A stretch of 64,000 nt of DNA, taken from positions 1 through 64,000 of the forward strand of contig JAXLNO010005746.1 in assembly GCA_038087875.1 (NCBI GenBank). The letters are read 5' to 3'. Within the stretch, counting starts at the first letter, position 1, and each line of letters opens with the position of its first letter. The translations under genes were made by a program, and so were the position numbers. Origin of the DNA: Malacoraja senta (taxonomy: Eukaryota). Shown here piece by piece: positions 5,831 to 45,395 of this stretch. The notes beneath the pieces are model-generated. The model was not told where the DNA came from, made no database searches, and saw only the letters and a program-made list of their open reading frames with translations.

Positions 5831-6237
5831 ATAGAATCAGAATCACACTTTATTCGCCAAGTATGTTTTCCAAAATAAGGCTCTACTTTTTTACGAATTT
5901 GATGTTTAAGAAAATAAAATACCGTGAGAAATGTGGCAACTCTTGTGTACTGTATCATATAATCTGCTATTAATACACTCTTGTCCTTTGCTTCAGCTGT
6001 GCTTATATAAAGTACTGAACTTCTACTGAATTCTATGCAAAAGAAATGTCACTGTACCCATGTACATGCGATAATAAAATACCATTGAACCATTGAGCAA
6101 TGGGGATACAAAAACGGTTACATGATTACAACTGTGGACATGCGTTAAAAGAATAAGATAAAAATTGAGGGTAATCGTTATATCAATATTGTTATTCTGA
6201 AGGAATGACGCCCAATAATCATCGTTTAGCTTTTCAG

Positions 6238-6307
6238 GGCCAGAGAGGGTGTTCACACCTTGACCCTACAGCATCACCACACCCCACCTATGTCCAATCT
6301 AACTTGA
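6238..6307 (+). CDS. Probable terminal (cytoplasmic) exon of an upstream receptor paralogue: (R)AREGVHTLTLQHHHTPPMSNLT*
   Basis: Acceptor ttagcttttcag|g, paralogous to 16237-16339 but 25 nt shorter, which shifts the frame; upstream exons are not in the window. Confidence 0.3.
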
Positions 6308-6309
6308 CC

Positions 6310-6530
6310 ACTTGAGGAGGAATTTCTTTAGCCAGCGGGTGATGAATCTGTTGAATTCATTGCCACAGACGGCTGTGGAGGCCAAGTCAATGGATATTTT
6401 TGGAGTGGAGATTGACAGGTTTATTCGGGGTGTCAAAGGTTGTGGGGAGATGGCAGGAAAATGGGATGGAGATGGAAAGATAGATCATCCATGATTGAAC
6501 GGCGGAGTAGACTCGATGGAGCAAATGGCC
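6310..6530 (+). mobile_element. CR1 3' fragment
   Basis: gaggaggaatttctttagccagcgggtgatgaatctg...; paralogous to 16340-16570. Confidence 0.8.
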
Positions 6531-6701
6531 AAATAAAGGGAATGTTTGCGGTGGTGGACAGAACGCCAGTCAAGTAGGCAAATGTCACCAGGATGAAGCA
6601 GAGCTTCGAGGAGATGCTCCAATCCAGGCAACTGGAGAGCGTTGCAGCGCAGTCCTGATAGGTGCATTGTCCGTGGTGAGGAGGCTGGGGGAGGTGGCAA
6701 G

Positions 6702-6758
6702 TGAGTCACCAAGTTAGTCTCGAACCACTGCAAAGTCGTTTCCTGAGTAAACGGAAAT
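6702..6758 (+). promoter_or_regulatory. Candidate TATA-less proximal promoter motifs of gene 1 (AP-1 plus two ETS cores)
   Basis: TGAGTCA 6702-6708, gtttcctg 6738-6745 and acggaaat 6751-6758, 85-140 bp before the ATG; conserved at 39006-39062; motif match only. Confidence 0.4.
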
Positions 6759-6842
6759 TGACTGTTTGACTTCTGTTGTGAATGAGGTAGGGAACAACTC
6801 AAACGCAGTGCAGGGACCAAACCGATCCAACGCAGCTGAGAC

Positions 6843-6939
6843 ATGGCGGTGGGACAGGGAGAATTCACCCACCAGAAACGGCCCAGATCCAGGGGAACAG
6901 TCGCTCTGTTGGTTCTTGTCGCTGTTGGTCTCACATCAG
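6843..6939 (+). CDS. Receptor gene 1 exon 1: signal peptide MAVGQGEFTHQKRPRSRGTVALLVLVAVGLTS(G)
   Basis: Kozak gacATGG; basic n-region and hydrophobic h-region; phase-1 donor tcag|gtaaat matches the phase-1 V exon; conserved at 39147-39243. Confidence 0.75.
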
Positions 6940-7169
6940 GTAAATCGTTGTTTTACAAAATGCTCTGTTCATTAGAATTATTTACTGGCGCCTTGAATTA
7001 TTTGTAACCAAGGACCTCTCTGTACTGTGTGGGGGGCTGATGATAAATTGCTCAACACTCGTTAGTTCCTGTAGAGACTTCCATCAGCGGTTGTTGTCGT
7101 GTTGTATGCAGCCAAATTGCACACAGCTAGCTCCCTGTGCAGAAGGGAGATAACTACCTGGACCTCATT

Positions 7170-7550
7170 GAAAGTTACCAAATAGTGAAAGGCCTGGACA
7201 GAGTGGATGGGGTGAGGATGATTCCACTAGTGGGATAGTCTAGGACCAGAGCTCACAGCTTCAGAATTAAAGGACATTCCATTAGGAAGGAGATGAGGAG
7301 GAATTTCTTTAGTTAGAAGGTGGTGAAACTGTGGAATTCTTTGCCGCAGAATGCTGTGGAGGCAGTCAATAGATATTTCTAAGGCAGAGATGGCTAGATT
7401 CTTGATCAGTACTGGTGTCAGGAGTCCTGGGGAGAAGGCAGGAGGATTTAGTTGAGAGGGAAAGATAGATCAGCCATGATTGAATGGAGGAGAGTAGACT
7501 TGATGGGCCAAATGGCCTAATTCTGCTCCTAGTACTAATGAACTTATGAT
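7170..7550 (+). mobile_element. CR1 3' fragment in intron 1
   Basis: ctcattgaaagttaccaaatagtgaaaggcctggacagagtgg...cctaattctgctcct. Confidence 0.8.
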
Positions 7551-7879
7551 CTGTTCTTCAGAATTATTTACTAGCACCTTGAATTATTTTGAGCCACAGA
7601 GCAGACTACTGGGCTACGAGTTGCTCAAGATAAAGTGCTTGCAGACTTGTTCTTTCCTGCACTAATGACTGTTGTGATGCTGTACACAGCCAAATGGCAC
7701 ACCGCTAACTCCCTGTAGAAAATTACCCGACAGCTGGCCTTGTTGATGTTGGGTGTAGGGGTAACTCTTGCCCCCAGACCAGAGAGTTTGCTCCACTATT
7801 CTGGTGCAAACTATCTCCAGGTGAACTTTCTCAGTGACTTGACAGCAGATCAGCTAAATGCTTTACCCCTTATATATCT

Positions 7880-8000
7880 CTTGACTTCCTCACTCCCTGA
7901 CTGTTGGTCTGAAGAAGGGTCTCGACCCAAAACGTCACCCATTGCTTCTCTCCAGAGATGAAGCCTGACCCGCTGCGTTACTCCAGCATTTTGTGTCTAT
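7880..8000 (+). mobile_element. Penelope-like terminal repeat fragment with hammerhead-ribozyme-like motif (7906-7939)
   Basis: ggt-ctgaaga-a-gggtc-tc-gaccc-aaaac-gtc-acc followed by family sequence gcctgacccgctgcgttactccagca. Confidence 0.65.
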
Positions 8001-8115
8001 CAAAGCCACACGGCACTCCCTCCACGCACTGCAATGGGAAATGTTGAACCTAAACCTTAGCACATTCAAAGATAAAACCTGTGAAAGTCAGCCATTGGCA
8101 ACAGGCGGGCATCTT

Positions 8116-8160
8116 AAATGAGGAAGTACTGTCCCATTTAGCATTTGGAGAAGTTGTGGT
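8116..8160 (+). promoter_or_regulatory. Candidate intronic myeloid-type element (PU.1-like plus RUNX motif)
   Basis: aaatgaggaagt 8116-8127 and TGTGGT 8155-8160; both retained in gene 2 intron 1; motif match only. Confidence 0.3.
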
Positions 8161-8344
8161 AATCTCTCCCTTCTGAGAAAAACCAGCTGCCTTACAGACT
8201 CTGCTGCTCGAGCTGTTCTTCACACCGTGCTTTCCCCAGCCTCTGAGCTCCTTCAAGGCATTTGTCTTGTGGCTTGTGAGCGGACCTGAACTGATCTGAT
8301 GATGTGCCTCCACCCCAGCTCCTGAATCTGCAGAGTTTCACATG

Positions 8345-8585
8345 TGTTAGAGTCATAGAGTGATACAGTGTAGAAACAGTCCCTTCAGCCCAACTTGCCC
8401 ACACCGGCCAACATGTCTCAGCAACACTAGTCCCACCTGTCCACGTTTGGTCCATGTCCCTTCAAACCTATCCTATCCATGTACCTGTCTAACTGTTTCT
8501 TAAATGATGGGATTGTCCTTGCCTCAACTACCTCCTCTGGCAGCTTGATCCATACACCCACCAGCCTTTATGTGAAAAAGACACC
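8345..8585 (-). mobile_element. CR1/HER1-type LINE 3' end
   Basis: Reverse complement reads gtgggtgtatggatcaagctgccagaggaggtagttgaggc...; catagag tail. Confidence 0.7.
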
Positions 8586-8869
8586 TCATGATTATGCCAC
8601 GTGGACGTGGAGTTTGAAACATCAGTGGCAGATCCAGCTTCCACCACAGGCCGGGAAGATTAGTTCAATGGGGCACAAAGTGCTGGGGTAACTCCGTAGG
8701 TCAGACAGTATCTCATGGTCTTGACTTGAAACGTCACCAATCCATGTTCTCCACAGATACTGCCTGACCTGCTGAGTCACCACTGGCTATTCAGCTTTAG
8801 TAAAACACAAAGTGCTGGAGTAACACTGCAGGTCAAGCTGCATCACTTGGTGACTTTCCTTTAGTGACT

Positions 8870-9160
8870 TTAGAGATACAGCACGGAAACAGGCCCTTTT
8901 GCCCACCAAGTCCACGCCGTACAGCGACCACCCGGCACACTACCACTAGCCTACTCACTAGGAACAATTTACAATTTTAACGAAAGCCAATTAACCTACA
9001 AACCTGCACGTCTTTGGTGTGTGGGAGAAAACTGGAGAAAGCCCACGCTGTCACGGGGAGAACGTGGAAACTCCGTACAGACAGCACCCGAGGTCAGGAT
9101 CAAACATGGGTCTCTGGCGCTGTAAGGCAGCAACTCTACCCCTGTGCCACTGTGCCACCA
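8870..9160 (-). mobile_element. HE1/V-SINE-type SINE
   Basis: Minus strand has a tRNA-derived head (gtggcacagggg...gagttgctgccttacagcgccagagaccc) and V-SINE core. Confidence 0.8.
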
Positions 9161-9880
9161 TGTCTCTACCTGTAACATTACATATCCATGTTCTCCAGCG
9201 ATGTTGCCTGACCTGCTGAGGCATCACAGGCAGCTGCCTATTCAGCTTTAGTAAAGCACAAAGTGCTGGAGTTCAAGTTCAAGTTCAAGTGAGTTTATTG
9301 TAACGTGTCCCTGATAGGACAATGAAATTCTTGCTTTGCTTCAGCACACAGAACATAGTAGGCATTTACTACAAAACAAATCAGTGTGTCCATATACCAT
9401 ACCATACCAGTAAGTCAGCAGGTCAGGCAGCATCTCTGGAGAACATGGATAGGTGACGTTTACGGTTGAGACCTGAATAAGGGGTAGGCCATTTTGGACT
9501 CAAATGAGGAAAAACATTTTCACCCAGAGAATTCCTCTTTCTCCAGAGATAGTTCCTGACCCGTTGAGTTACTCCAGCACTTTGTGTCCTTTTGTGTATT
9601 AACCAGCATCTGCAGTTCCTTGTTTCTACTTGTTCAATGGGGAAGTGGGTTGTAGTGAGATTGAACACAGGGTGGGTCAGATTGAGTGACAGGTTTGGCT
9701 TCCTGTCACAGGACCACCACTCAGGTCAAGCCACGCCCACAGGGAAGGATGATCTGGGCGCCAGGTAGATTCACAAGCACTTCTGCTTTCACTGGAACTT
9801 GGGGAACAATCCTGGTGAAATGGGAATTAACACCAGCGGGAAAAGCATGAAAGTGCAACAGGTTCTATGCAAAAGAAGAG

Positions 9881-10014
9881 AGACACAAAATGCTGGAGTA
9901 ACTCAGCGGGACGGGCAGCATCTCTGGAGAGAAGGAATGGGTGAGGGAACATCACCCGTCGGTTTCTCCAGAGATGCTGCCTGTCCCGCTGAGTTACTCC
10001 AGCTCTTTGTGTCT
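9881..10014. repeat. Inverted repeat of Penelope-type ends (50-bp arms, 47/50, 34-nt loop)
   Basis: 9881-9930 vs reverse complement of 9965-10014; paralogue at ~42248-42381. Confidence 0.8.
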
Positions 10015-10171
10015 ATCTTTGGTGTAAACCAGCACCTGCAGTTCCTTGCTGCACACGATCTATGCGAAACCATGAACCTGTCTGAACACACAAATTACAT
10101 GTTTTTTATTGTTAAACCTCAGCTTGTGTTGCTGCAGTGTGAGTGATCTTTCATCATTAATGTGCCCACAG

Positions 10172-10495
10172 GGTCAAGGGGAATAACTGGACACAAGGAG
10201 GTGAGGGGAGAGTTGGGGCAGTCGGTCACTGTGGAATGTCCATATGATCAGGAATACAGTGACAACAGGAAGCTATGGAGTAAAGGTGATGATTACTGGA
10301 CATCTGAGACCGTGGTTTCTACTGATCACCCACGACAAGGGGGAACTTCGATGACTGATAACAAAACAGAACAGATACTTTCAGTAACCATCGACAAACT
10401 GGAGAAGAGTGATGAAGGATACTACTGGTGTGTGATAGGAAAGGCAATATTGTCATTCAATGAAAAGACCTCCATCTCATTGAAGGTTTCTGAAG
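10172..10495 (+). CDS. Receptor gene 1 exon 2: Ig V-set domain of CD300/pIgR/TREM (MDIR-like) type
   Basis: VRGELGQSVTVECPYD...W...LSVTIDKLEKSDEGYYWC (C-X63-C); acceptor cccacag|, donor gaag|gtacat; 324 nt, phase 1-1. Confidence 0.92.
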
Positions 10496-10593
10496 GTACA
10501 TTGACGATCTCTCCTCACTCTCCCAGATGTGAAAATTCCAGCCTGGGATTTCCCGGCCTCGGTCATGACGGTGCCACATCCCCGGGGGTCCGT

Positions 10594-10635
10594 GGGGGGG
10601 AGGAGTTTGGGGGGAGGTGAGGGGGGGTAGGGGGG
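10594..10635 (+). other. Strong G-quadruplex motif G7-N8-G6-N6-G7-N2-G6
   Basis: Four runs of 6-7 G read directly; copy at 42962-43003. Confidence 0.8.
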
Positions 10636-11074
10636 ACCCGCTGCATGGGGCCACACCAAGATCCCACTGTCCCAGGAGCAGTGTGGGGGGTGGGGGGGAT
10701 CTCATCAATGGGGACCGGCGGTCCTGCTGCTGACGGTTCATTTCCCCAAACACGATCTCTCCGGGACCAGAACCTCTGGTGCCCCCTCACTGGAGCAGGG
10801 GGGGTGGAACCACCCCCTCACCCTCTCCCCCTTCCCGTCAATGTCACACCCACCACACACACAACATCTGAAGAAGGGTCCCAAGCCTATACATCGTCTA
10901 TTCATTCCATCCACAGATGCTGCCTGACTTGCTGAGTTACTCCAGCACTTTGTGTATTGCTCAAGATTCCAACACCTGCAATTCCTTGTGTCTCACAAAC
11001 TATGGTGATTCATGAGCTCAGTTTATTGTTGTCGCCTGTACTGAGGTACAGGGAAAAGCTTTTACCATGTTTCC

Positions 11075-11270
11075 AATGAGGGCCAAGTCATTGGGTATTT
11101 TAAGTGGAGATTGACATGTTCTTGATTAGTATGCATGTCAAGCGATATGAGGAGAAGGCAGGAGAATGGGGTTGAGAGGGAGAGATAGATCAGCCATGAT
11201 TAAATGGCGGAGTAGACTCAATGGACCAAATGGCCTAATTTTGCCCCTATTATTTATGAACTTATGAACT
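11075..11270 (+). mobile_element. CR1 3' fragment
   Basis: gagggccaagtcattgggtatttttaag...gatagatcagccatgattaaatggcggag. Confidence 0.75.
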
Positions 11271-11811
11271 AAGAATCCGCATGATGTGAGTGATATAGAC
11301 TTTACACTGAGCCACACAAACTGTACAAGATGAAATACTCAACGGGTCGGGCAGCATTTATGGAGAGAGACGAGACTTAATGTTTCAGGTAGATACCTCC
11401 AACCAAATTGCATTATTTTCAATTCAGTCCACGTAATGAAAATAGTCCATGGATCCTCCCACTCCCAAGTTCTTCTCCAACGTAGAAGACACTTGCCTAA
11501 CTCCAGCAGCAGGCAGACAACACAGCCTGTGGGACTCTGAAGGGCATGAAAGAAGTCAATGAATGCTTGCGACCATCCGGTGGCATCTTAATGGGTGAGC
11601 CTCCTGTCTAGATCAAGAGGCTTGGTCCATCTATGGTGGCCTCAGAAGGATCTTTGCCCAAATGTGTGGAGTCGGATTTGAACCCAGGAATCTCCCCACA
11701 CCGAGCAAGAGCGTTCCCAACTGAGGCATCTCCCACACCTCACTAAAGAGGCACAGGACGTGCTCTCAGACATTTAATGTTCAAAAACTTCATTCACTTT
11801 ATCTCCACAAG

Positions 11812-11896
11812 GGTCTCAAACAAGCCGCCCAGATATGATCATCACCACCGAGGCAGCAAGTTCCACTGAGTCTCTTGGTTCAACACCTCCAAACAG
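11812..11896 (+). CDS. Receptor gene 1 exon 3: Ser/Thr/Pro-rich stalk (G)SQTSRPDMIITTEAASSTESLGSTPPN(R)
   Basis: Acceptor ttcactttatctccacaag| (AAG, non-optimal), donor aacag|gttagt; phase 1-2 joins the V and TM exons in frame. Confidence 0.75.
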
Positions 11897-11949
11897 GTTA
11901 GTAACTCGAAGAGCCAACTCAGCCTCACCTGAGAACAAATTAGTTAAGT

Positions 11950-12190
11950 TCAGTTCAGCTCAGTTAAAAGATACAGCGTGGAAATGGACCCTTTGGCCCA
12001 CCGAGTCCGCTCTGATCAGCGATCACCCCATACACTAGTTCTGTTCTACATACTAGGGGCAATTTACTACAAACCGGCATGTCTTTGGAATGTGGGAGGA
12101 TACTGGAGAACCCAGAGTAAACTCTTGTGATCACAGGGAGAACATACAAACTATGTACTGACAGCACCAGTAGTCCGGTAGGATCGTATC
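11950..12190 (-). mobile_element. HE1/V-SINE-type SINE
   Basis: gatacagcgtggaaatggacccttt...tgtgggagg... Confidence 0.7.
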
Positions 12191-12821
12191 CTATTGTTAG
12201 TAAAATCATGCCCAGTACTTTGAGAAAGCGTGGCTGATCACATTCCAGTCCATTGATAAATAGTCATTGGCCTTGATTAAAGTCCCTCTGTCCTTAGTAC
12301 ACCCAGTGGCCCTACCATTGTGAATGTCTACCCTTATTTGATGCCAAAAACAAATAACTTCACACTTATCATGGTTCAATACCGGCTGGCATTGCTCTGC
12401 CCAACATACCAGTTGCTTCTTATCCCTCTGTGGTCTATGATTATCGTACTATCCAAAATGCTACAATTTTGGTGTAATCTGTAAACACGTTAATCATACT
12501 TCCAACAATAACATCTAAGGCCGGCAGATGGGAATAGTGTCGATAAGGACATCTTGGTCGGCGTGGGGAAATTAGGTCCAAGGACATGTTTTCATGCTCT
12601 ATGTCTGACCACCAACATGAACATCTAAGTTGTCAATGTATGTAGTCATGGAACACCTCCAAGGAATGGGTGCATGTTGCGATATAAACATCTTACCAAT
12701 GTCTACGCCACAACCTTGGATCACACTGAATGATTCCGTGTGCAATATGATGGAAATAATCTCCCAGCGTTGATCTTTGATAACTCTGTGTGGAAGTAAT
12801 AATATTTCCTTGGATTTCCAG

Positions 12822-12929
12822 GGACATCGTGTTGAATGTTCGCCGTGTTTGGGGTGTGTCACGCTGGGTACTCTTTGGAGTTCTGCTTCTCTTCCCGGTT
12901 TCCATCAGCTGTGTGACAACTTTTAAAAG
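12822..12929 (+). CDS. Receptor gene 1 exon 4: transmembrane exon (R)DIVLNVRRVWGVSRWVLFGVLLLFPVSISCVTTFK(R)
   Basis: Acceptor tttccttggatttccag|, donor aaaag|gtaaaa; phase 2-2; hydrophobic helix with an N-terminal Arg. Confidence 0.8.
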
Positions 12930-13027
12930 GTAAAAGTTTGTAATCTCTTCACTCTGGTGATGACATTAAATTCAATTGGAAATGATGGGAATTTACTTTA
13001 GAATTCTGGAGATAAAGTGTGGACATA

Positions 13028-15216
13028 CAGTGCCCTCCATAATGTTTTGGACAAAGACCCTTCATTTATTTATTTGCCTCTGTATTCCACAATTTGAGAT
13101 TTGTAATAGAAAAAAATCACATGTGGTGAAAGTGCACATGGACAGATTTTATTAAAGGGTATTTTTATACATTTTGGTTTCACCATGTAGAGATTACAGC
13201 TGTGTTTATACACAGTCCCCCCATTTCAGGGCACCATAATGTTTTGGACTCATTGCTTCACAGGTGTTTGTAATTGCTCAGGTGTGTTTAATTGCCTCCT
13301 CAATGCAGGGATAAGAAAGCTCTCAGCACCTAGTCTTTCCTCCAGTCTTTCCATCACATTTGGAAACTTTTATTGCTGTTTATCAACATGAGGACCAAAG
13401 TTGTGCCAATGAAAGTCAAAGAAGCCATTCTGAGACTGAGAAACAAGAATAAAACTGTTAGAAACATCAGCCAAACATTAGGCTTACCAAAATCAACTGT
13501 TTGGAACATCATTAAGAAGAAAGAGAGCACTGGTGAGCTTACTAATCGCAAAGGGAATGGCAGGCCAAGGAAAACATCAGGCCAAGATGACAAAAGAATT
13601 ATCTCTATAAAAAAAAAAACCCCAAACACCTGTCCGACAGATCAGAAACACTCTTCAGGAGTCAGGCGTGGATTTGTCAATGACCACTGTCTGCAGAAGA
13701 TTTCATGAACATAAATACGGAGGCTACACTGCAAGATGCAAACCACTGGTTAGCCGCAAAAGTAGGATGGCCGGCTTACAGTTTGCGAAGAAGTACTTAA
13801 AAGAGCAACCACAGTGCTGGAAAAAGGTCTTGTGGACAGATGAGATGTACAGGGTCTTGGTGAGACCACACCTGGAGTATTGCGTACAGTTTTGGTCTCC
13901 AAATCTGAGGAAGGACATTATAGCCATAGAGGGAGTGCAGAGAAGGTTTACCAGACTGATTCCTGGGATGTCAGGACTTTCATATGAAGAAAGACTGGAT
14001 AGACTTGGCTTATACTCGCTAGAATTTAGGAGATTGAGAGGGGATCTTATAGAAACGTACAAAATTCTTATGGGGTTGGACAGGCTAGATGCAGGAAGAT
14101 TGTTCCCGATGTTGGGGAAGTCCAGGACAAGGGGTCACAGCTTAAGGATAAGGGGGAAATCCTTTAAGACCGAGATGAGGAAAAACTTTTTCACACAGAG
14201 AGTGGTGAATCTCTGGAACTCTCTGCCAAAGAGGGTAGTTGAGGCCAGTTCATTGGCTATATTTAAGAGGGAGTTAGATGTGGCCCTTGTGGCTAAGGGG
14301 ATCAGGGGGTATGGAGAGAAGGCAGGTAACGGGATACTGAGTTGGATGATCAGCCATGATCATATTGAATGGCGGTGCAGGCTCGAAGGGCCAAATGGCC
14401 TACTCCTGCACCTATTTTCTATGTATCTATGTACCTATGTAAGATTAACATATCAGAGTAATGGCAAGAGCAAAGTATGGAGGAGGGAAGGAACTGCCCA
14501 AGATCTAAAGTATACCACCTCATCTGTGAAACACGGTGGTGGCGGTGTTATGTCCTGGGCATGTATGGCTGCTGAAGGTACTGACCCATTTATCTTCCTT
14601 GGTAATGCAACTGCTGATGGTAGTAGCATAATGAATTCTGACATGTATAGAGACATCCTATCTGCTAGAGGTTGACGGTTCATTCTACAGCAAGACAATG
14701 ATTCCAAACATATTGCAAAAACAACAAAGGAATTTTTCAAAGCTAAAAAATGGTCAATTCTTGAGTGGCCAAGTCATTCTGAACCCAATTGAGCATGCCT
14801 TTTATATGCTGAAGAGAAAACCGAAGGTGACTCGCCCCCAAAACAAGCATAAGCTAAAGATGGCTGCAATACAGGCCTGGCAGAGCATCACCAGAGAAGA
14901 CACCCAGCAACTGGTGATGTCCATGAATCTCAGACTTCAGGCATTCATTCCATGCAAAGGATATGCAACAAAATACTAAACATGACTACTTTCATTTACA
15001 TGACATTGTTGTGTCCCAAACATTATGGTGCCCTGAACTGGACTATGTATAATCACTGCTGTAATTTCTACCTGGTGAAATCAAAATGTATAAAAATCTG
15101 AAAATGTGCACTTTAACATATGTGATTTTTTTTTCTATTACTATTCTCAAATTGTGGAGTACAGAGGCAAATAAATAAATGATGGGTCTTTGTCCCAAAC
15201 ATTATGGAGGGCACTG
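13028..15216 (+). mobile_element. Tc1/mariner (IR/DR-type) DNA transposon, defective, interrupted by CR1
   Basis: TA|cagtgccctccataatgttt...aaacattatggagggcactg|TA; ~200-bp TIRs with inner direct repeats; transposase remnants (paired-like HTH, GRPRK, WTDE, QDN, NPIE). Confidence 0.92.
13846..14440 (+). mobile_element. 5'-truncated CR1 inserted in the Tc1 transposase just after WTDE
   Basis: tgtacagggtcttggtgagacc...ttttctatgtatctatgtacctatgt; Tc1 resumes at aagattaac. Confidence 0.9.
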
Positions 15217-15460
15217 TAGGCCCTACAGCCAACCAAATCCGCGCTGACCAATGATCACCCCGTACACTCGCACTATCCTACACATGAGGGACAATTTACA
15301 ATTATACAGAAGCCAATTAACCTACAAAACTACACGTCTTTGGATTGTGGGAGGAAACCGGAGCACCCGGATAAAACCCACGCTGCCTTACAGCGCCAAA
15401 CCCGGGTCTCTGGCGCTGTAAGGCAGTAACTCTACCGCTGCGCCACTGTGCCGCCCTGGG
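15217..15460 (-). mobile_element. HE1/V-SINE split by the Tc1 (its 3' tip is at ~13005-13027)
   Basis: Rejoined flanks gagataaagtgtggaca-TA-ggccctacagcc resemble SINE gagatacagcgtggaaacaggcccttcggcc. Confidence 0.7.
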
Positions 15461-15499
15461 TCATTTCCTCGGGTAAAATTTGATGGTAGAGATTATAAA

Positions 15500-15860
15500 C
15501 TGCGTTTTAATTGTTATTCAAGGAAAAAAACAGCCGAGATGTTGGAGATGGGGTCGGCAGCGGTGGAGGGAGGAGAAGAACAGTGCCGGTGAGCTGGCTG
15601 GGAGACGGCGTGGGAGGTGAGGGGAAAAGGGTGCGTTGGTTGGTCGAGGTGTGGGCGGAGTGCGAGTGGGCTGCTGGAGGCCCTGCAGCAGCCGGTGGAT
15701 CGGGTGCCGCTGGAGGCCCCACAGAGGTCGGGGACGAGCGTGCGGAGCGGACACGTCCTGCAGCGGCACGGAGCGGCGGTGGAGGCACCAACAACATCGC
15801 CAGGCCAGGCCGACCCCTGCAACTCCCACCCAGTGCAGTCCCCACGACAACGAGACTTTA
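15500..15860. other. GC/CpG-rich island of unknown origin in the last intron
   Basis: High GC and CpG content, internal repeat gctggaggccc x2, overlapping low-complexity ORFs; absent from paralogous 5.85 kb position. Confidence 0.5.
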
Positions 15861-16236
15861 AGCCCAAAATATGACAATACTTTTTTATCAATTTGATGTT
15901 TAAGAATATAAGATACTGCCAGAAATGTGGCAACTCTAGTGTACTGTATCATATAATCTGCTATTAATACAATCTTGTTCTTAGCTTCAGCTGTGCTTAT
16001 ATAAAGTAAGATTTGTACTGAATTCTATGCAAAAGAAATTTCACTGTACCCATGTGCATGAGACAATCAAGTACCATTGAACCATTGAGCAATGGGGATA
16101 TAAAAATGGTTACATGATTACAAGTATTGAACTTGGACACGCGTTAGAACAATAAGATAAAAATTAAGGGTAATCGTTATATCAATATTGTTGTTCTGAT
16201 GGAATGACGTCCAATAATCATCGTTTAGCTTTTCAG

Positions 16237-16339
16237 GGCCAAAGAGGGTGTTCACCAGTTGCAGATGGACAAATCTCATCACCTTGACCCTACAGCATCA
16301 CCACACCCCACCTATGTCCAATCTAACTTGACCACTTGA
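16237..16339 (+). CDS. Receptor gene 1 probable exon 5: cytoplasmic tail (R)AKEGVHQLQMDKSHHLDPTASPHPTYVQSNLTT*
   Basis: Acceptor gtttagcttttcag|g; phase 2 matches the TM exon; open to TGA; AATAAA ~395 nt downstream; stop abuts a CR1 fragment, so tentative. Confidence 0.45.
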
Positions 16340-16733
16340 GGAGGAATTTCTTTAACCAGAGGGTGATGAATCTGTTGGAATTCATTGCCACAGATGGCTG
16401 TGGAGGCCAAGTCAATGGATATTTTTAAATTGGAGATTGACAGGTTTACTCAGGGTGACAAAAGTTGTGGGGAGAAGGCAGGAGAATGGGATGGAGGGGG
16501 AAAGATAGATCATCCATGATTGAATGGCGGAGTAGACTCGATGGAGAAAATGGCTGAATTCTGTACCTATGTTTGCAGACACGTCTGTACATCCTGACAT
16601 TCACCCAAAAGACAGCAGTACATAGACTAGAACTCAAAGCAGGCTCTCCAGAATGTGAACTTTTAACTTTACTACCAATTGAATTGTTGTGTAAAACCCT
16701 GCACATTGAATAATGATTAAAATAATCCAATGT

Positions 16734-21121: not shown

Positions 21122-24100
21122 CTAGTCAGGTTCTTGTGCTGAACCATTCTGACCCTTTAAATAATCAATAAAGGGAGACCATGTTCCAACGAATAATTCC
21201 TGTTTGTCCAACAGGGCAAATCTGATTCTTTCCACATTTAAGGTCTCCGTCATTTCTATAATCCACATTTTGATTGTGGGGGTTATAGGGCCTTTCCAAA
21301 ATTTTAGAATTAATTTTTTTCCCGTTATTATACTATAACCAATAAAGTGTCTTTGTGTTGTTGTAAATGTTTGATTTAATTCTAATGTTCCGAGTATTAT
21401 TAGTTTTGGATCCGGGTCCAATTGTGTGCTGGTCACTTTAGATATTATACTGAAAATATTTACCCAGAATTTTTTTATTTTTATACAGTTTGCAAACATA
21501 TGAGATAAGTTAGCTTCTAAATGTTGACATTTATCACATATAGGTGAGATATGTTGAAAGATTTTATGTAATTTTGTTTTTGAATAATGTAACCTATGTA
21601 TTACTTTAAATTGTATTAAAGAATATCTGGCATTTAATGAACATTGATGTATGTGTTGTAAACTTTCTTCCCAAGTATCTTTCGTTATTATTTGATTTAA
21701 TTCTTTTTCCCATGTTTGTCTGTGTAAGTCCGTCGATGGAATGTTACTGTCTAATAAAATATTATATATATATGATATTAATTTTTCTGTATTAGGATGT
21801 TTATTCCAACATTCATCAAGAATTTCTGAATTTCTAATTCGAAAATTTTGAGTATTCGATTTTACATAATCTCTGAGTTGAAGATATCTGAAAAAATCAT
21901 TTCCTCGAAATCCATAAGTCTGTTGCAACTCCTGAAATGTAAGAAAAGTGCCTTCCTTGTAAAGATGTCCCATATTTTTGATTCCATATTTCTTCCATTG
22001 TGTAAAACCCCTGTCCAACCATGAGGGTTTAAACAAAGGGTTATTCACAATTGGAAGAATAAGTGATGTTATCTAATTTTAATGTATTTTTTAATTGTTT
22101 CCAAATTCGTATAGCACTAAATATTATAGGGATTTCCATATACATTTTTTTGTTTAATTTAGACGTAGCAAATAATATCGAGCCGATATCAAAAGGTAAA
22201 CAATCTTCCTTTTCCATTTTTAACCAATCTGGTTGTTGATCTATTTCTTCCAACCAGAAATTCATATTTTTAATATTAACTGCCCAAAAATAAAACAGGA
22301 AATTTGGTAGAACCAAGCCTCCATTTATTTTTGATTTACACAAATGTCTTTTGTTTATCCTATGATTCTTATAATCCCAGATAAAATCATTAACAATGGA
22401 ATCCAATTTAAAAAAAAAGTTTTTTGACAAATATATCGGAATTGTCTGAAAAAGGTATAATATTTGTGGTAAAAAAATCATTTTTATGGCATTAATTTTG
22501 CCAACCATTGAGATAGGAAGTGTTTTCCAATATTGAATATTCTTATGTAATTTGTTCAGTAATGGGGGAAAATTTGCTTTAAATAATGATGTATATATCT
22601 TAGTTACGTAAATGCCTAGGTATTTGAATTTTTCATTTACTATTTTAAATGGAAATTGTTGTATTATCTGTTTGTTGTGTTCCCTTATTGGCATAATTTC
22701 ACTTTTATTCCAATTTATTCTGTATCCTGAGAGTGAACCAAATTGGGTTATTAGCTTTAATAAGTTTGGAATACTAATTTCTGGTTTTGTAATCTAAATT
22801 AGTACATCATCTGCGTATAGAGAAATTTTATTCACTGTATCCTTTGTATTATACCCATGTATTTCCGGATGACCCCTAACTCTTTCTGCGAGTGGCTCAA
22901 TAGCAAGCGCAAATAATAATGGAGATAACGGGCATCCTTGTCTACAACCTCTAGATAGGCTGAATTTAGATGACAACCTTTGGTTTGTTAATATTCTAGC
23001 CGTAGGGTTTGTATATAACAGTCTTATCCATGTGCAGAATTTCTCCCCTAGCTGCATATTTTCCATCACCGAAAATAAATAGGACCATTCAACCTGATCA
23101 AAAGCTTTTTCAGCGTCAAGTGAGATTATTGCTAGATCTTCATTAATAATTCTCTTAGAATATATAATATTAAATAATCTTCTTAGATTATAATATGAGT
23201 ACCGTTTCTGAATAAAGCCTGTTTGGTCAGGGTGTATTAATTTATTCATCACTGTACTTAATCTATGCGCTAGTATTTTAGTTAATATTTTCTGATCTGT
23301 ATTTAAAAGTGCAATTGCTCTATATGATCCCGGATCTTCCGGATCTTTATCAACTTTAGGAATAAGTGTTATTATAGATTCATTTAAAGTATCTGGAAGT
23401 TTCTGTTGTGTATAGATATGCTCATACAGCCTTTGTAAACGTGGGGAGAGCAAGTCATAAATTTTTTTATAGAATTCAGAGCCTAAACCATCTGGTCCTA
23501 CTGCTTTACCATTTTTTAAAGAGCCAATAGACTCTTCAATATCCTTTATCGTAATCTCCCTTTCTAATAATTCTCTATCGTTTGAGTCTAAACCTTTTAA
23601 ATTACATTTTAGTAAAAAATCTGCTATTCCTTCTGGTTGTACTACAGTTTTAGTTGAATAAAGATTATGATAGTATTGGAGAAATCTCTCGTTTATATCC
23701 TTGGGCATTTTTAATTATTCTCCTGTATCTGTTCTAATTTTATGAATTATTTTTTCCCCCTCCATTTTTCATAACTGACGTGCTAATAGTTTTTGTGGTT
23801 TGTCTCCAAACTCGAAATGTAATTGTTTGGTTTTTTGATAAAGTTTTATTACTTGTTCTGAATACATTTTGTTTAATTTATATTTCAATACAGCAATTTT
23901 ATTATGTTTTAAAATAGATGGCATTCTCGCATTTTCTATATCTAGTTGCTTGATTTCCCTTTCCAATGTTTGTTGTTTAATCCTCTTTATTATAAAATAC
24001 TTGGGCAGAAATTAATGCACCTCGAACAAACGCTTTAAACGTTTCCCACATAAGAGAAGTGGGTGTGTCAGGGTTGTCATTTACCTCAAAAAATATTTGA

Positions 24101-24926
24101 ATCTGTTTAATAAGATATTCCTGGCATGAACTTTCGTTCAAAATTTGTGGGTTAAATCTCCAATATGTTTGTTTCTCGGACATTCCATTTAATTTAATCA
24201 TGAATGTTACAGGTGCGTGATCTGAGATTATAATATTATGGTATTTTGAGTTGTAAGTAAATGGGATAAACGTGGAGTCAGCTAAAAAATAATCTATTCT
24301 TGAGTATGTTTTATGTACTGGTGAGTAAAATGAATATTCCCGTCCAGTTGGATTTTCAATTCTCCAGACATCCTTAATATTAGTGGTATTAATAAATGAA
24401 TTTCAAAATACACTTGATTGAGATTTTACTTTTTTTTGCCTTGATGATCTATCTAAGTATGAATCTAATGTGCAATTGAAGTCTCCTCCAATTATTAATT
24501 TATATTGTGTAAATTCAGGAATTATATTAAATGTTTTATTAAAAAACATAGGATTGTCAAAATTAGGCCCATATACATTAAGAAGAATCACTTTTTCTCC
24601 ATTTAACTCTCCAACTAATATAATATATCTACCATCAATATCCGCTATTGTTGATGAATGCGTATAAGGTATTCCTTTACGAATTAATATTGTCCTCTGG
24701 ACTTATGGGAAAAAGAGGAATGATATGATTCAGCGATCCACTTAGCTTTAAGTCTATGTTGAGATTCCTTTTTAAGGTGTGTTTCTTGAAGGAATATTAT
24801 ATCTGTTTTGATTGAATTTAGATGTGCCAAAACTTTACCTCTCTTAATTGGTTCATTGATTCCCTTAACATTCCAACTACAAAATGTTATTCCCTCACCC
24901 CCTCTTGTCATATTAACATCTTGCAT
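21122..24926 (-). pseudogene. L1 ORF2 (APE endonuclease, RT, Cys-rich C-terminus) in several broken frames
   Basis: SWNVKGIN...LQETHL; NVYGPN...GGDFN; YRAIALLNTD...DQTGF...DAEKAFD...RQGCPLSP...YADD; CDKC...HMFANC. Confidence 0.92.
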
Positions 24927-25322
24927 ATTGTTTCTAAGGTGGTCTATAACCGAGCAGAAGGTGCAACACATAAAACCTGACCCTGCTCCCGAACCTCAAA
25001 TAGATGAATTTTAAATAATATACATCGCTCTTCCGAACACATCTCCTTGAATTAGTCTTGTTGTTCCATTCAAACATTGTTATAAAAATATTTAAAGTGA
25101 AAAAAGTGATAGAATTGGTTAGTATAGGGTGAAAGAAAAAAAACTACATCTACAATTAGTGTAGTTAGTGATAGCCACACTAACGTGGCTAGAATTCTAA
25201 AGACTTCCGTAGCCTTTGTAAAAAAAAAATCCCAGCTCCGTGCCCGAGAAAAAAAAAATGAATATTTCTGACAATCAATTAACTTCTTTGGGAGTAGCAA
25301 ACATATATATATACACATACAT

Positions 25323-25377
<55 letters not shown>

Positions 25378-26062
25378 CCCATATGCATACATATATATGC
25401 ACATATCCCTGCAGAAAAGTCCAAAAACAGCATAAATTCACAACGTTATTATTCTCTACATACCGTATTAATATCTTCGCTAAATCTATAAATTTAATTT
25501 TAAATTGAAAAATAAAGAGAAAAACCGTCAAACCTTATTATGACGTAGGCTGAATTACCTCTTGCACATATTCCTACAGAATATAAGTATGTAACTCATT
25601 TCTACGTTAACCAGAGACTTTTAGTTATTGATCATTGTTATCAATCATACCTAGTATTAAATTTTTATGAGTAATATAGATGTTAATAATTTTAGTAATA
25701 ATATAGATATTTAATAAGTATTAGTAGTTACATATATAGTTAGATATGAATATACTAAATAGTAATAGTGATTAATAACAATTGGTCGTAACTATGATAT
25801 TATTGTTCTTAGAGTTGATACTAAAAATAAAAAAAGATTAAAAAATAAAAAACCACGGTTTTCTCCAATGTCCACCGTCCATTTCAGTTTTCGAATGTCC
25901 TTAAAGCTCTTAAAAGAACTTTAAAGGTCCTTTTAAATCTGGCGAAGTCCCATTAATCCTTGACTCCTGAGGAGTAATGCAAATTCTTCAGTCTGTGGTC
26001 ACGTTCTCGATTTCTTTGGCAAATTCCAGTGCTTTTTCGTGGTCTGTAAAAAATTGCTCCTT

Positions 26063-27052
26063 CTACTTGTAGGTGACTCTTAGTCTTGCGGGGTAAAGCA
26101 AGCCGTATCTCAATGCAGGTACCTTCTTCAGTATTCTTTTTGTCTCAGTGAACAGCGCTCTTTTCTTGAAGACCTCTGCCGGATAATCTTGGTAAATACT
26201 GAACCTCGCACCTTCAAAATAGAGCTGTCCGCTTCGGACAATTTTCTTCATTATCTCGTCAAATTCATGATCAAGTTGCACCTTTACTATAATTTGTCTT
26301 GGATGGGCATCATCTTGTGTACGACGCCCCTGCGCTCTATGTGCTCGACCGAGTGAAGGTTTCTGATCCAATTTTAAGGCTTTTTGTAGTAGGTCTGCCA
26401 CAAAATCCCGAGGGCCCATTTCCCTCTCACTTCCTTCTTTCATCCCTACAATTCTTAAATTCTTGCGTCTTTGACGCCCCTCCAGATCGGTACACTTATC
26501 ACTTAATTTGATCACCATACCGGAGAGGCGTTGGTTTTCAATAAGGAGTCGATTTACAGTTTCCTCACTTGTCGCCGCCCATTTCTCAAGTTCGGTTATC
26601 GCTGTTCTATGTTGATCAAGTGCTTGATGAATGGGGATCACCTCCCTATTAATGCTCGATTCCACCGAAACGAGCCTGGCTTCCAGCACTTCCATCTGTT
26701 CCTTGGCCTCATCGTCCCTCGACCACTTCCAGACTTCCAGTATTTCTTGAACGGTAGAATCCATTTCTGCTTTAAAATCTTCCTTGAAAGAGTTAAGTTC
26801 CTCTTTAAAATTCAATTTCAAATTTCCTTCGAAGGTTTTCAACTGTAGTTGAATCTGTTTAATTTCAACAGCAAGAAAAGTTTTAGATCTTCAATTTCAG
26901 ACTTTTTCTGCTTTGATTTCTTCGTTGGGTCTTCCTGGGCCGTCATTGTAACTGAGGCCGAGGCCTCAGTTAGGCCTACCTCTTCCATCGGTGGTTTCCC
27001 ATTAACGGTTTTTTTTGGCCCACGGGGGGGGGGGGGTATGTTGCATCGACAT
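26063..27052 (-). pseudogene. L1 ORF1 (coiled coil, RRM, CTD), frameshifted near 26845
   Basis: DLEGRQRRKNLRIVGMKEG...RAHR...SIYQDYPAEV...RYGLLYPARLRVT. Confidence 0.88.
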
Positions 27053-27224
27053 ACCATCAAAGTCGCGCGCCTGATGACGTCACGCGGCAGGCAGCCGTTC
27101 AGATCGCGATCGCTGCAGGTAAGACCCGATTTTCTCCCGTTTTCAGATTCTTCGGCACGGAGCTAGTTGGCACTGGACTCAAGCCTCCATAGCGCCACCG
27201 GAAGTCAGTAAAAAAAAAAAAAAA

Positions 27225-29369: not shown

Positions 29370-29650
29370 TTCGAGATACAGCATGGAAACAGACCCTTCG
29401 GCCCACCGAGTCCACGCTGACCATCGATCACCTGTTCACACTAGTCCCACGTTACACCGCTTTTGCATGCACTCCCTACACATTGAGTGCAATTCGACAA
29501 GAGGGCCAATTAACCTACAGAGCCACACGTTTTGGGGATGTGGGAGGATGCCGGAGCACCCAGAGGAGACCCACGCGGTCACAGGGAGAACGTGCAAACT
29601 CCACACTGATAGCGCCGGAGGTCAGAATTGAACCTAGGTCTCTGGTGGTG
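29370..29650 (-). mobile_element. V-SINE at the start of the repeated spacer block (copies ~36117, ~61739, inverted at 5580)
   Basis: gagatacagcatggaaacagacccttcggcc...gcaaactccacactgatagcgccggagg. Confidence 0.75.
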
Positions 29651-32600
29651 GTTGCAGTTCCACCTTCAGCAAACCCAACACCACAAATATCACCCAGAAC
29701 AAGCCTCTCCATCACCAGTGTAGCAGTGTGACAACACAATGTGAGCAACTCACAACAAAATAGGTTGAGAAACAGGAAGACACAAGGAAGTACAGATGCA
29801 GTGATATCTGATAGTCCGCTCGAGTAGATTGCAACCCAATGGTGGGAACATTGAATTTTCTAGTGTTAAGTAATTAACCCACAACAATCTTTTCCCCTAA
29901 TCTCCGTCCCTTTCCACATCTATATATATATATATATATATATCCTTTCTTCCAGCTTCATATTTCATGCCTCTTCTCTCAATATCTCATATCACCATAT
30001 CTCACAGCCTTTTATCTTCTTTCCATCTCTGGCCTTCGTCCACCCATCAGCCAATAACCCTCTCTCCCTCACCTGTATCCACCTATCACTTGCCAGGCTT
30101 CAGCCTTCCCCCACCTCTCTCCCAGCTTTCTCCCCCCTACTACAATCAGCCTGAAGAAGGGTCCCAACCCAAAACCTTACCTATCCATGTTCTCTGGAGA
30201 TGCTGCCTGGCCCATTGAGTTACTCCAGCATTATATGTCTGTTTTTGAGAAATAGGAAGTTGTGAGGTTGATAAGAAGATTTGAACAACAGTGTAAATAT
30301 TTTGAAACCAAATCATTGGTTCCACGGGTTAGGGTTGTTATGACAGTATGCAGGGTGGGTTATCAGATCTGTGAGGTGTGGAGAACCATGGTCAAGTCCA
30401 AATCCACCCGCATGTCACAGTGCCAGGGTGAAGGGTGAGTGGGGCAGAGCAGGGTGGGACACTGGCACCAGAGTTAAACTCATAGTCATATAGTGCAGAA
30501 ACAGGCCCTTCTTCCCAACTTGACCATGCTGACCAAACTGCCCACCTACACTTGTAGTAGTGTAGTTACTATATGTAGTGTACTCCAGCAGTATGAACAT
30601 TGACTTCTCCAATTTCAGGTGGTCCTTGCTTTCTCCCTCCTTCCCCTTCCCTTCCCAGCTCTCCCACAGCCTACTGTCACCTTCTCTTCCGTTCTTCTTC
30701 CTGCCTCCCGCCCCCACCTCCACATCAGTCTGAAGAAGGATCTCGACCCGAAACATCACCTATTCCTTCGCTCCATAGATGCTGCCTCACCCGCTGAGTT
30801 TCTCCAGCATTTTTTACTACCTTCGTTTTTTCCAGCATCTGCAGTTCTTTCTTAAACCTAAACTAGTTTAGTTTAGTTTAGAGATACAGCGTGGAAACTG
30901 GCCCTTCGCCTACCGAGTCCGCACCGAACAGTGATCCCACGCATTAACATCCTACATGCACTGGGGACTATTTATACTTATACCAAGCCAACTAACCTAC
31001 TAACCAATACGTTTTTGGAGTGTGGGAGGAAACTGAAGATCTCGGAGAAAACCCAGGCGGTCACGGGGAGAACGTACAAACTCCCTAAACAAGAGTGAGG
31101 GTTAACTTCTGGATTCACCCTCAGACACAGACACATTACCTTGGTTTTACAGTAGAAATCCCTTCAAATGCTTTCATGAAGTTCTTTTCCAAAATAATTG
31201 CTATATACACAGTCATAGTGTGACTCAGTGTGGAAACAGGCCCTTCTGCCCAACTTGCCGACACCAGCCAACATGTCCCAGGCCAGCTACACTAGTTCCA
31301 CCTGCTCGCATTTGCCCCATATCCCTCCAAACCTGTCCTATCCAAGTACCCTATCTAACTGTATCTAAAACGTTAGGATAGTCCCTGCCTCACTACCTCC
31401 TCTGGCAGTTTGTTCCATATACCCACCACCCTTTCTGTGAAAAAGTTACCCCTCAGATTCCTATTGAATCTTTTCCCCTTCACATTACACCTATGTCCTC
31501 TGGTCCCCGATTCACCTGCACTGGGAAAGTGACACTGTGCATCTACCCAATCTATTCCTCTTGTAATTTTATACATCTCTATAAGATCACCGCTCATCCT
31601 CCTGCGCTCCAAGGAATGGAATCCCAGCCTACTCAACCTCACTATAGCTCAGACCATGTAATCCTGGCAACATCCTCATAAATCTTCTCTGTATCCTTTC
31701 CAGCTAGACAACATCTTTCCTATAACACGATGCTTTTGAAAGACCCATCTGGTTATTATATCAATTGATCACTAATTACTGTTCTCACCTCTAATGACAA
31801 GAGCAGCTTAGGTTAACCAATAAAATATGTTTGTTAATAAACATCTTTTTAAACAAAACCAGTTCTGCTGTTTGGCATAATTCTTTCCTAAAAGCAAGTG
31901 ATTATACAATCCTTATACAATACTTGGGGTGCTGTATCAGGTAATATGGTTAATGTAGCTATTTATTGCAGATAAATTGCAGGGGTGTGGAGGCAAGGTC
32001 AATGGATATTTTAAAGTTAGTTTTGATGTAGGAACAGGCCAGGGTAACATGTAGGCTATGAGAAAGATTAGTCTTTAGATTCTGGAGTAGTTCCTGAGGA
32101 TTGGAGGGTAGCTAATGTAACCCCACTTTTTAAAAATGGAGGGAGAGAGAAAACGGGGAATTACAGACCAGTTAGTCTAACATCGGTAGTGGGGAAACTG
32201 CTAGAGTCAGTTATTAAAGATGGGATAGCAGCACATTTGGAAAATGGTGAAATCATTGAACAAAGTCAGCATCGATTTATGAAAGGTAAATCATGTCTGA
32301 CGAATCTTATAGAAGTTTCTAGGATGTAACTAGTAGAGTGGATAAGGGAGAACCAGTGGATGTGTTATATCTGGACTTTCAGAAGGCTTTCGACAAGGTC
32401 CCACATAAGAGATTAATATACAAACTTAAAGCACACGGTATTGGGGGTTCAGTATTGATGTGGATAGAGAACTGGCTGGCAGACAGGAAGCAAAGAGTAG
32501 GAGTAAACGGGTCCTTTTCAGAATGGCAGGCAGTGACTAGTGGGGTACCGCAAAGCTCAGTGCTGGGACCCCAGCTATTTTCAATATATATTAATGATCT

Positions 32601-33856
32601 GGACGAGGGAATTGAATGCAACATCTCCAAGTTTGTGGATGACACGAAGCTGGCAGGCACTGTTAGCTGTGAGGAGTGTGCTAGGTGGCTGCAAGATGAC
32701 TTGGATAGGCTGGGTGAGTGGGCAAATGCATGGCAGATGCAGTATAATGTGGATAAATGTGAGGTTATCCACTTTGTGGCAAAAACAGGAAAGTAGACTA
32801 TTACCTGAATGGTGGCCAATTAGGAAAAGGGGAGATGCAACGAGACGTGGGTGTCATGGTACACCAGTCATTGAAAGTAGGCATGCAGGTGCAGCAGGCA
32901 GTGAAGAAAGCGAATGGTATGTTAGCATTCATAGCAAAAGGACTTGAGTATAGGAGCAGGGAGATTCTACTGCAGTTGTACAGGGTCTTGGTGAGACCAC
33001 ACCTGGAGTATTGCGTACAGTTTTGGTCTCCTAATCTGAGGAAGGACATTCTTGCCATAGAGGGAGTACAGAGAAGGTTCACCAGACAGATTCCTGGGAT
33101 GTCAGGACTTTCATATGAAGAAAGACTGGATAGACTTGGCTTGTACTCGCTAGAATTTAGAAGATTGAGGGGGAATCTTATAGAAACTTACAAAATTCTT
33201 AAGGGGTTGGACAGGCTAGATGCAGGAAGATTGTTCCCGATGTTGGGGAAGTCCAGAACAAGGGGTCACCGTTTAAGGATAAAGGGGAAATCTTTTAGGA
33301 CTGAGATGAGAAAAACATTTTTTTTTTTTTGAAAATATTTTTTATTGGAGATAAAACACAACATATTATCATCATTACCAGTCTTACATTTTTAAATTGA
33401 TAATATCGTCAATTATTATTACATTGTCTCCAATACCTTTTGCCTTTTTTAAAAAAAAATTTTAAACTAGATAGAACTAAAAAGATAGATGAAGTAAAGA
33501 AAGAAAAAAAAAAAAGAAAACAGAGAAGAAAAAGATAGTTAAAGAAGAATGGAAACATTTATTAAGATAAAAAACTTCGTTCGAGATATATTCGTACATT
33601 TCAGAGTATAACATTTCATCCATTCTTTAGCCCGAGTGCTAGTCAGGTTCTTGTGCTGAACCATTCTGACCCTTTAAATAATCAATAAAGGGAGACCATG
33701 TTCCAACGAATAATTCCTGTTTGTCCAACAGGGCAAATCTGATTCTTTTCTTTCCACATTTGATTCTGATTCCACATCTGATTCTTTCCACATTTAAGGT
33801 CTCCGTCATTTCTATAATCCACATTTTGATTGTGGGGGTTATAGGGCCTTTCCAAA
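29650..33856 (+). repeat. Duplicate of ~17150-21300 (offset ~12.5 kb)
   Basis: Same order of unique DNA, SINEs, CR1 RT (19823 vs 32338) and L1 3' end, with scattered substitutions. Confidence 0.9.
32064..33317 (+). mobile_element. CR1 LINE RT region (paralogue of 19549-20802)
   Basis: ORFs 32338..32796 and 32835..33332. Confidence 0.9.
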
Positions 33857-33953
33857 TCGCTGCAGGTAAGACCCGATTTTCTCCCGTTTTCAGATTCTTC
33901 GGCACGGAGCTAGTTGGCACTGGACTCAAGCCTCCATAGCGCCACCGGAAGTC
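33318..33953 (-). mobile_element. Internally deleted L1 (3' ~500 bp fused to 5' ~100 bp; ~5.8 kb lost)
   Basis: Junction gggcctttccaa|a|tcgctgcaggtaag at ~33856 joins 21300 to 27110; both termini and flanks retained. Confidence 0.92.
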
Positions 33954-38790: not shown

Positions 38791-38814
38791 TTCGGACACA
38801 GTGTGCCTGCATTT

Positions 38815-38838
38815 GGGGGAGGGGGTTGAGGGGGTGGG
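38815..38838 (+). other. G-quadruplex motif G5-A-G5-TTGA-G5-T-G3 upstream of gene 2
   Basis: Read directly; ends just before homology with the gene 1 upstream region begins (38840 vs 6536). Confidence 0.7.
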
Positions 38839-45297: not shown

Positions 45298-45395
45298 GTA
45301 AAAGTTTGTAATCTCTTCACTCTGGTGATGACATTAAATTCAATTGGAAATGATGGGAATTTACTTTAGAATTCTGGAGATAAAGTGTGGACATA

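Follow-up and report, generated by a model that had tools for sequence, protein, structure and literature searches.

The window analysed here is a stretch of 64,000 nucleotides from the skate Malacoraja senta (assembly GCA_038087875.1, contig JAXLNO010005746.1, positions 1 to 64,000). It contains two genes in the same orientation, two units of what is best explained as a tandem array of small CD300/pIgR-like receptor genes of the activating type. The gene models are as follows:

6843-15592, forward strand: gene 1, five exons, intact open reading frame of 227 amino acids (tblastn with CMRF35-like molecule 3 of the thorny skate Amblyraja radiata, splice sites, Pfam V-set domain at 8e-12)
Exons of gene 1, forward strand: leader 6843-6939, V 10172-10495, stalk 11812-11896, transmembrane (TM) 12822-12929, tail including the stop codon 15523-15592
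39147-47960, forward strand: gene 2 (proposed hybrid), five exons, intact open reading frame of 227 amino acids (A. radiata proteins as guides, spliced open reading frame)
Exons of gene 2, forward strand: leader 39147-39243, V 42540-42863, stalk 44180-44264, TM 45190-45297, tail including the stop codon 47891-47960

In both genes, AG acceptors precede exons 2-5, GT donors follow exons 1-4 and the reading frame is continuous. The predicted proteins consist of a signal peptide, one V domain, a stalk rich in Ser, Thr and Pro, a TM segment with arginines and a tail of 23 amino acids; tblastn found one V exon in each gene. The TM exon encodes ...NVRRVWGVSRWVLFGVLLLFPVSISC... and its arginines are of the activating type. 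The spliced open reading frame is thus predicted to have the type I layout of activating forms, with a short tail and a charged residue in the TM segment, and inspection of the 23 amino acids of the tail by eye revealed no ITIM. The V exon was found in none of the RNA runs that were searched for it.

Both V exons have a Pfam V-set domain (8e-12 and 8e-13), and the relatives of the V domain in the PDB are pIgR (3e-29), CLM-1/CD300f (1.5e-14) and CD300a (2e-9). The only database proteins matched are two A. radiata proteins annotated as 'CMRF35-like molecule 3', with 74% identity over the V domain. A second disulfide (WCR...C motif) is described as typical of CD300 domains (PMC3031540). Both V domains have the canonical Cys pair only, with WSK in place of WCR/K, and the second intradomain disulfide is absent; for this reason, we call the genes CD300/pIgR-like rather than members of CD300.

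The two predicted proteins differ at seven residues only (S32P, R35W, H40P, K41E, T76K, E78S, L126V), all within the leader and the V domain. Stalk, TM segment and tail are identical, and so are all 263 nucleotides of coding sequence downstream of the V exon. Six residues differ between the V domains themselves. Two are located in the C'-C'' loop region and one is in the F-G region, and among the A. radiata copies these regions are hypervariable. Four adjacent bases that differ between the two genes (TGAG at 10305-10308, ATCT at 42673-42676) account for E78S, which is in the region of the C'-C'' loop. This codon is hypervariable among the V exons of A. radiata, and the cluster of four changes is possibly a micro-conversion from another paralogue.

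Comparison of the window with itself by blastn identified a tandem repeat with a period of ~32.37 kb. A single colinear HSP pairs 8281-31629 with 40650-64000 (23.35 kb, 99.57% identity), and a column-by-column listing gave 101 columns in which the two copies differ. These differences are concentrated at one end: 83 difference events are found in the 2170 bp up to the last dense difference, T10450/G42818 (3.8%), and only 15 in the 21,179 bp from there to the end of the window (0.07%). This confirms the earlier note, which had named t10450/g42818 as the last difference, followed by near-identity. The 15 remaining differences are 12 substitutions and three length changes in (TA)n microsatellite or poly-G runs. 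Throughout the text, D1 and D2 denote the diverged front blocks of the two units and I1 and I2 the two copies of the near-identical block behind the switch:

6536-10450, forward strand: D1, front block of unit 1, with ~300 bp of promoter, the leader exon, intron 1 and most of the V exon
38840-42818, forward strand: D2, front block of unit 2 (self-comparison, global alignment)
10347-10500, forward strand: switch in unit 1, 95% support interval from the change-point likelihood
42715-42868, forward strand: proposed tandem-duplication joint in unit 2, the equivalent of 10347-10500, where a D2-type V exon runs in register into I-type sequence
10451-31629, forward strand: I1, near-identical block of unit 1 up to the point where its partner leaves the window; unit 1 itself runs on to 38839
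42819-64000, forward strand: I2, second copy of the near-identical block, ending at the edge of the window

The switch is real and highly non-random. Two rates describe the distribution of differences better than one (likelihood-ratio statistic 316), the 95% interval is accompanied by a 99% interval of 10308-10538, and a gap of 2273 bp free of differences has a probability of ~2e-22 at the local rate of 2.2%. The 95% interval corresponds to the last third of the V exon (10172-10495) and the first 5 bp of intron 2. As the interval lies almost wholly within the exon, the exchange most likely occurred inside the last third of the V exon rather than in intron 2; of the two places named in the earlier note, the 3' V exon and the beginning of intron 2, the first is thus the more likely. 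When polarised against six V exons of A. radiata, G42818 is the derived state in D2. It could therefore post-date the duplication, in which case the true joint would be situated between 10348 and 10450, up to ~100 bp further upstream.

The offset between the copies is 32368 both directly before and directly after the switch, with no base gained or lost and with the frame kept, and this indicates a homologous exchange, in register; by the end of the window, the offset has become 32371. D1 and D2 have the same orientation, are 96.4-97.9% identical across the 1.2 kb that precede the switch and share an identical run of 102 bp immediately to the left of 10450.

Block I1 contains the end of the V exon, intron 2, the stalk, TM and tail exons and a spacer rich in transposable elements. 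I1 and I2 are 99.93% identical over at least 21.2 kb, and this includes at least 15 kb of the spacer. A Tc1-like HTH (a transposase fragment) and two RVT_1 open reading frames are inside the near-identical block. The spacer between the genes is ~23 kb long, compared to ~2 kb for the homologous spacers in A. radiata. Since the same insertions cannot arise independently in two units, the spacer must have been copied: the back block is a duplicate and not the product of convergence. The substitution divergence between I1 and I2 is 0.057%, ~50 times less than the 2.8% between D1 and D2 near the switch and ~150 times less than the divergence of either copy from A. radiata (~8.5-9.6%). In the young tract, the 12 substitutions show a transition to transversion ratio of 2:1 and an even distribution along its length, and four of the 12 are at CpG; this pattern resembles germline mutation.

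The front blocks are very different in this respect. By global alignment, homology between the units begins at 6535/38839, and D1 and D2 are 2-11% diverged, depending on the segment, with large indels in addition; the earlier description of 6536-10450 and 38840-42818 as diverged and rich in large indels was accurate. The first segment (6535-7158) is 4.5% diverged from its counterpart in unit 2. It is followed by a 5' part of intron 1 that is essentially non-homologous between the units (D1 7278-7850, D2 39627-40022), and 214 bp are inserted in D2 at 40348-40561. The blocks diverge by 6.3% over 8281-8760, by 11.5% over 8900-9107 and by 2.1-3.6% from 9285 to the switch. Amid the blocks with 6-11% divergence are two patches with zero differences (8761-8899 and 9108-9284), which look like old, short gene-conversion tracts.

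Counterparts of the two front blocks are found in the corresponding cluster of A. radiata, examined over 68 kb of CM021389.1 (~34.49-34.56 Mb; loci L001 and L002, gene models P0001 and P0002). In the 5' part of intron 1, D1 aligns colinearly with the P0001 gene (merged Ar 9698-11672, 91.3% over 1981 bp), while the equivalent part of D2 is colinear with two A. radiata genes on the minus strand (Ar 42651-41055 and Ar 58238-56634, 89% over 1638 bp). As each type is colinear with a different A. radiata paralogue, the two structural types of intron 1 predate the split of the skate lineages. The segments that flank this part of the intron appear homogenised within species.

The upstream flanks of the two units differ too. 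To the left of D1 is a piece of a further unit:

5870-6534, forward strand: 'post-tail' remnant of the preceding gene unit, 87.6% identical to 48232-48922 (equivalent to 15864-16554 in unit 1)

This remnant is 84-87% identical to the segments just downstream of the A. radiata tail exons and directly adjoins the promoter of gene 1. In A. radiata, ~900 bp are found between the post-tail segment and the promoter, and these are missing at gene 1. The sequence to the left of 38840 is a high-copy repeat; D2 retains an extra 75-147 bp of ancestral sequence on this side (38692-38839), where its homology to A. radiata extends to 38692. These flanks, together with two intron-1 structures that each have a different counterpart in A. 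radiata, show that D1 and D2 are paralogues and not alleles.

We consider it probable that the window records a recent tandem duplication of ~32.4 kb by unequal homologous exchange in the 3' part of the V exon, and that gene 2 is a hybrid. The starting point would be two older neighbouring paralogues with distinct promoter, intron-1 and V sequences (D1 and D2). Misaligned non-allelic homologous recombination (NAHR) would then have paired the 3' end of the V exon of D2 with the corresponding position in gene 1, giving a tandem duplication of ~32,368 bp, in which 10451-42818 was copied to 42819-~75186; the final 11.2 kb of this predicted copy are past the end of the window. Gene 1 would have kept its parental structure, and the joint 42818/42819 would have created gene 2 as an anti-Lepore-type hybrid. 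The D2 lineage would have supplied the promoter, the leader and intron 1 together with nearly the whole V exon, and gene 1 the last codons of that exon, intron 2 and everything behind it, with the stalk, TM and tail exons and 23 kb of transposon-rich spacer. With copies that are 0.06% apart in substitutions, compared to 2-7% for D1 and D2 and ~9% for the distance to Amblyraja, the event would be very recent. The assignment of gene 2 as the hybrid follows from the geometry, as 42818/42819 is the sole novel junction in a simple tandem duplication.

The earlier note had also suggested an unequal crossover, and the in-register exchange and the duplicated spacer speak for it; what does not hold as simply is the single event, since the front block is a mosaic of older exchanges, possibly of several events. 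The zero-difference patches and the uneven depth of divergence between D1 and D2 indicate that exchanges were recurrent in the front block. By this pattern, the D blocks are a mosaic of older exchanges and any single-event history is a simplification.

A comparison of two copies alone cannot distinguish a crossover from a conversion, and short conversion-like patches do exist in the D blocks; the back half of one old unit could, in principle, have been overwritten by that of the other by a long conversion tract, with no duplication involved. We regard this as highly improbable. The tract would need to be at least 21 kb long, probably ~28 kb, and to have moved ~15 kb of transposon insertions, which the ~2-kb spacers of A. 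radiata lack. Conversion tracts of at least 21 kb are far beyond those known from vertebrates. Gene conversion as the sole mechanism was rejected on tract length and transposon content.

A divergence of 0.06% is also within the range to be expected between alleles, and the second I block could be an assembly artefact, either a falsely duplicated haplotype or a repeat that was over-expanded or over-polished, so that the animal would have fewer I blocks than the assembly. Several observations make this quite unlikely. The window has no runs of N and no gaps anywhere. D1 and D2 have non-allelic flanks and non-allelic intron-1 structures, and a false join would need to land exactly at the edge of the homology. 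The in-register joint between D2 and I requires reads that carry that joint, and the spectrum of differences between the copies is germline-like.

Public read data were available as short Logan contigs of 100-350 nucleotides from four runs, with heavy transposon noise and with a depth that is no measure of copy number. In two runs of one organism, 61-70% of the words sampled from 39900-45800 are present, as are 75% of the words from the V exon of gene 2. Exact contigs on 38700-44600 include D2-specific sequence (38860-39119 and 39752-39900) as well as I sequence (43672-43786 and 43120-43239); none of the short contigs listed for this region bridges the joint 42818/42819. At the V-exon sites 42563, 42669 and 42673, letters of the D1 type and of the D2 type are both present in two samples of the same organism. 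The ratios of D1 to D2 letters, from contig data with noisy depth, disagree between these samples (~1:2.6 in X1, ~1:1 or the reverse in X2). At 42618, 43105, 43119, 43807 and 43926, the contigs have letters that are found in neither copy of the window, and G at 42618 is the majority letter in all four runs; there must therefore be more members of the family elsewhere in the genome.

Among annotated genes, those of the A. radiata cluster are the closest relatives of the two M. senta genes. Its 'CMRF35-like molecule 3' has the same five-exon layout, with an identity of 69-74% in the V domain, 91-100% in the leader and 91-95% in the TM segment. Like the window, it is a mosaic of exchanged segments, and it contains a 98.8% duplicate at an offset of 25.4 kb. 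It differs in having a period of 10-15 kb, spacers of ~2 kb, genes in both orientations and some genes with two V exons; no equivalent of the 32-kb unit was found in the A. radiata cluster. Judged from both clusters, exchange is habitual in the skate CD300/pIgR-like family. At least seven gene copies, in both orientations, are present in the cluster of A. radiata, and in two of them a tandem repeat of 3.2 kb doubles the V exon. The annotated P0002 model spans 27 kb, apparently across two genes.

In phylogenetic trees of five segments with the A. radiata sequences, D1 and D2 pair as sisters in the promoter/leader segment and in that of the V exon, while at 8281-8820 both are unresolved among the A. 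radiata copies. Around the switch, the copies of each skate cluster by species, as is expected from concerted evolution. The segment trees do not tell whether the I block first belonged with D1 or with D2, and the hybrid nature of gene 2 is deduced from the geometry of the tandem duplication, as the trees gave no pointer.

The clustering by species raises the question of whether the whole array evolves in concert: the 32-kb unit would have been amplified and repeatedly homogenised, and the switch would be a recurrent boundary, set by a hotspot or by selection that keeps V differences. Gene 2 would then not stem from one identifiable crossover, and a third V exon need not match the second. The clustering in the trees of both skates is in agreement with this, and so are the stepwise drop in divergence between D1 and D2 towards the switch, with its zero-difference patches, the lower protein identity of the V exons of A. 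radiata (62-85%) in comparison with its TM exons (89-97%) and the additional V variants that contigs of the same organism show, such as G for A at 42618. We nevertheless think of such array-wide homogenisation as possible but rather unlikely. The divergence in the window is no island around the V exon but spans intron 1, leader and promoter to the edge of the homology. The dN/dS of the V exon is ~0.8 and the exon is no more diverged than the intron next to it (p = 0.19), so there is no sign of diversifying selection between the copies. The boundaries of the mosaic in A. radiata (13548 and 15831) flank the V exon (13927-14286) and are off its end. A candidate for a local hotspot is present in intron 2:

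10584-10698, forward strand: G-rich tract in intron 2 with a G4 motif at 10609-10635; copy at 42952-43066

This tract lies beyond the 99% interval of the switch, which also counts against a recurrent boundary, and the G-quadruplex-like tract is not supported as a cause of the switch on these grounds. Positive selection was likewise rejected as an account of the two V copies: dN/dS between them is 0.82, and the exon is not denser in differences than the adjoining intron (Fisher p = 0.19).

A related idea is that the 3' end of the V exon, or else the first part of intron 2, is a recurrent exchange point in a large and recently amplified CD300-like array of the skate, which we consider unlikely. 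If true, V exons would be cassettes that are re-paired with a common block of stalk, TM, tail and spacer, either by a hotspot or by selection for V diversity, and the array would be a case of germline 'ectodomain shuffling' in an innate receptor family of cartilaginous fish.

On the reading that we favour, one recent unequal crossover, like was probably swapped for like. The two genes of the window and all seven TM exons in the 68 kb of A. radiata encode the same activating-type TM segment (89-97% amino acid identity, same arginines), and the six tail exons found in that cluster all encode the same short tail (72-83%); TM exons and tails are thus of the same type throughout. There is no sign of the shuffling of recognition and signalling modules that the earlier note had envisaged, as every relative seen has the same activating-type TM segment and short tail, and nothing points to a different signalling type in the lost partner of D2. 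The functional effect of the duplication is probably one more gene copy, with a V domain that is six residues off that of gene 1 and with the same signalling module.

Haemoglobin anti-Lepore hybrids are the duplication product of an unequal crossover between tandem paralogues. The skate case shares with them the in-register exchange of neighbouring paralogues, the proposed hybrid gene between the parental types and the duplication of one period, but the skate period measures 32 kb, most of it transposons, the third gene is a prediction and no reciprocal deletion haplotype of the Lepore type is known. Among immune receptors, FCGR2C was formed by an unequal crossover between FCGR2A and FCGR2B. 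As proposed for gene 2, it joins the ectodomain of one paralogue to the TM segment and tail of another within a segmental duplication. However, FCGR2C pairs an inhibitory ectodomain with an activating tail, and there is no evidence of such a swap in gene 2.

The KIR genes have hybrid genes and copy-number variation caused by NAHR (Traherne et al. 2010, PMC2816608; Pyo et al. 2013, PMC3606631). Like the skate genes, they are a tandem cluster of innate receptors of the Ig superfamily, in which misaligned recombination results in hybrids, promoter switches and changes in copy number. KIR hybrids often join different signalling types, with breakpoints linked to Alu or other repeat sites, whereas the skate exchange is within the V exon and both partners are apparently of the same activating type. 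Probably related are the modular domain immune-type receptors (MDIR) of the clearnose skate, which are cited as CD300/pIgR-like, with similarity to CD300, TREM and pIgR (PMC3031540). They too are a multigene family of cartilaginous fish with V domains of the pIgR/CD300 type and with activating or inhibitory forms. Their name implies a modular ectodomain of several Ig domains, whereas the genes here have a single V domain.

The skate case is a new instance of a known process (KIR, FCGR, globin) and adds no new principle. It would extend this process to the CD300/pIgR-like genes of skates and offers a very young and well-resolved case of growth of an innate immune receptor cluster in a cartilaginous fish, with the point of exchange confined to ~150 bp and with both genes intact. 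For annotators, gene 2 is best treated as a probable hybrid. The 32-kb repeats with 99.9% identity in GCA_038087875.1 probably differ in number from one individual to another and need validation by long reads.

The 32-kb unit also has older repeats nested within it. The sequence at 16941-21231 matches 29430-33748 with 96.9% identity, and 27109-30541 matches 33856-37257 with 97.4% identity at an offset of 6747. These matches point to an older local duplication, in tandem, of ~6.7 kb of spacer that a LINE-like insertion has split. A LINE-like element is found on the minus strand at 21125-27100, with a copy at 53493-59470 and an RVT_1 domain at 22797-23714; it is AT-rich (GC ~30%) and has long open frames, with its open reading frames in several pieces.
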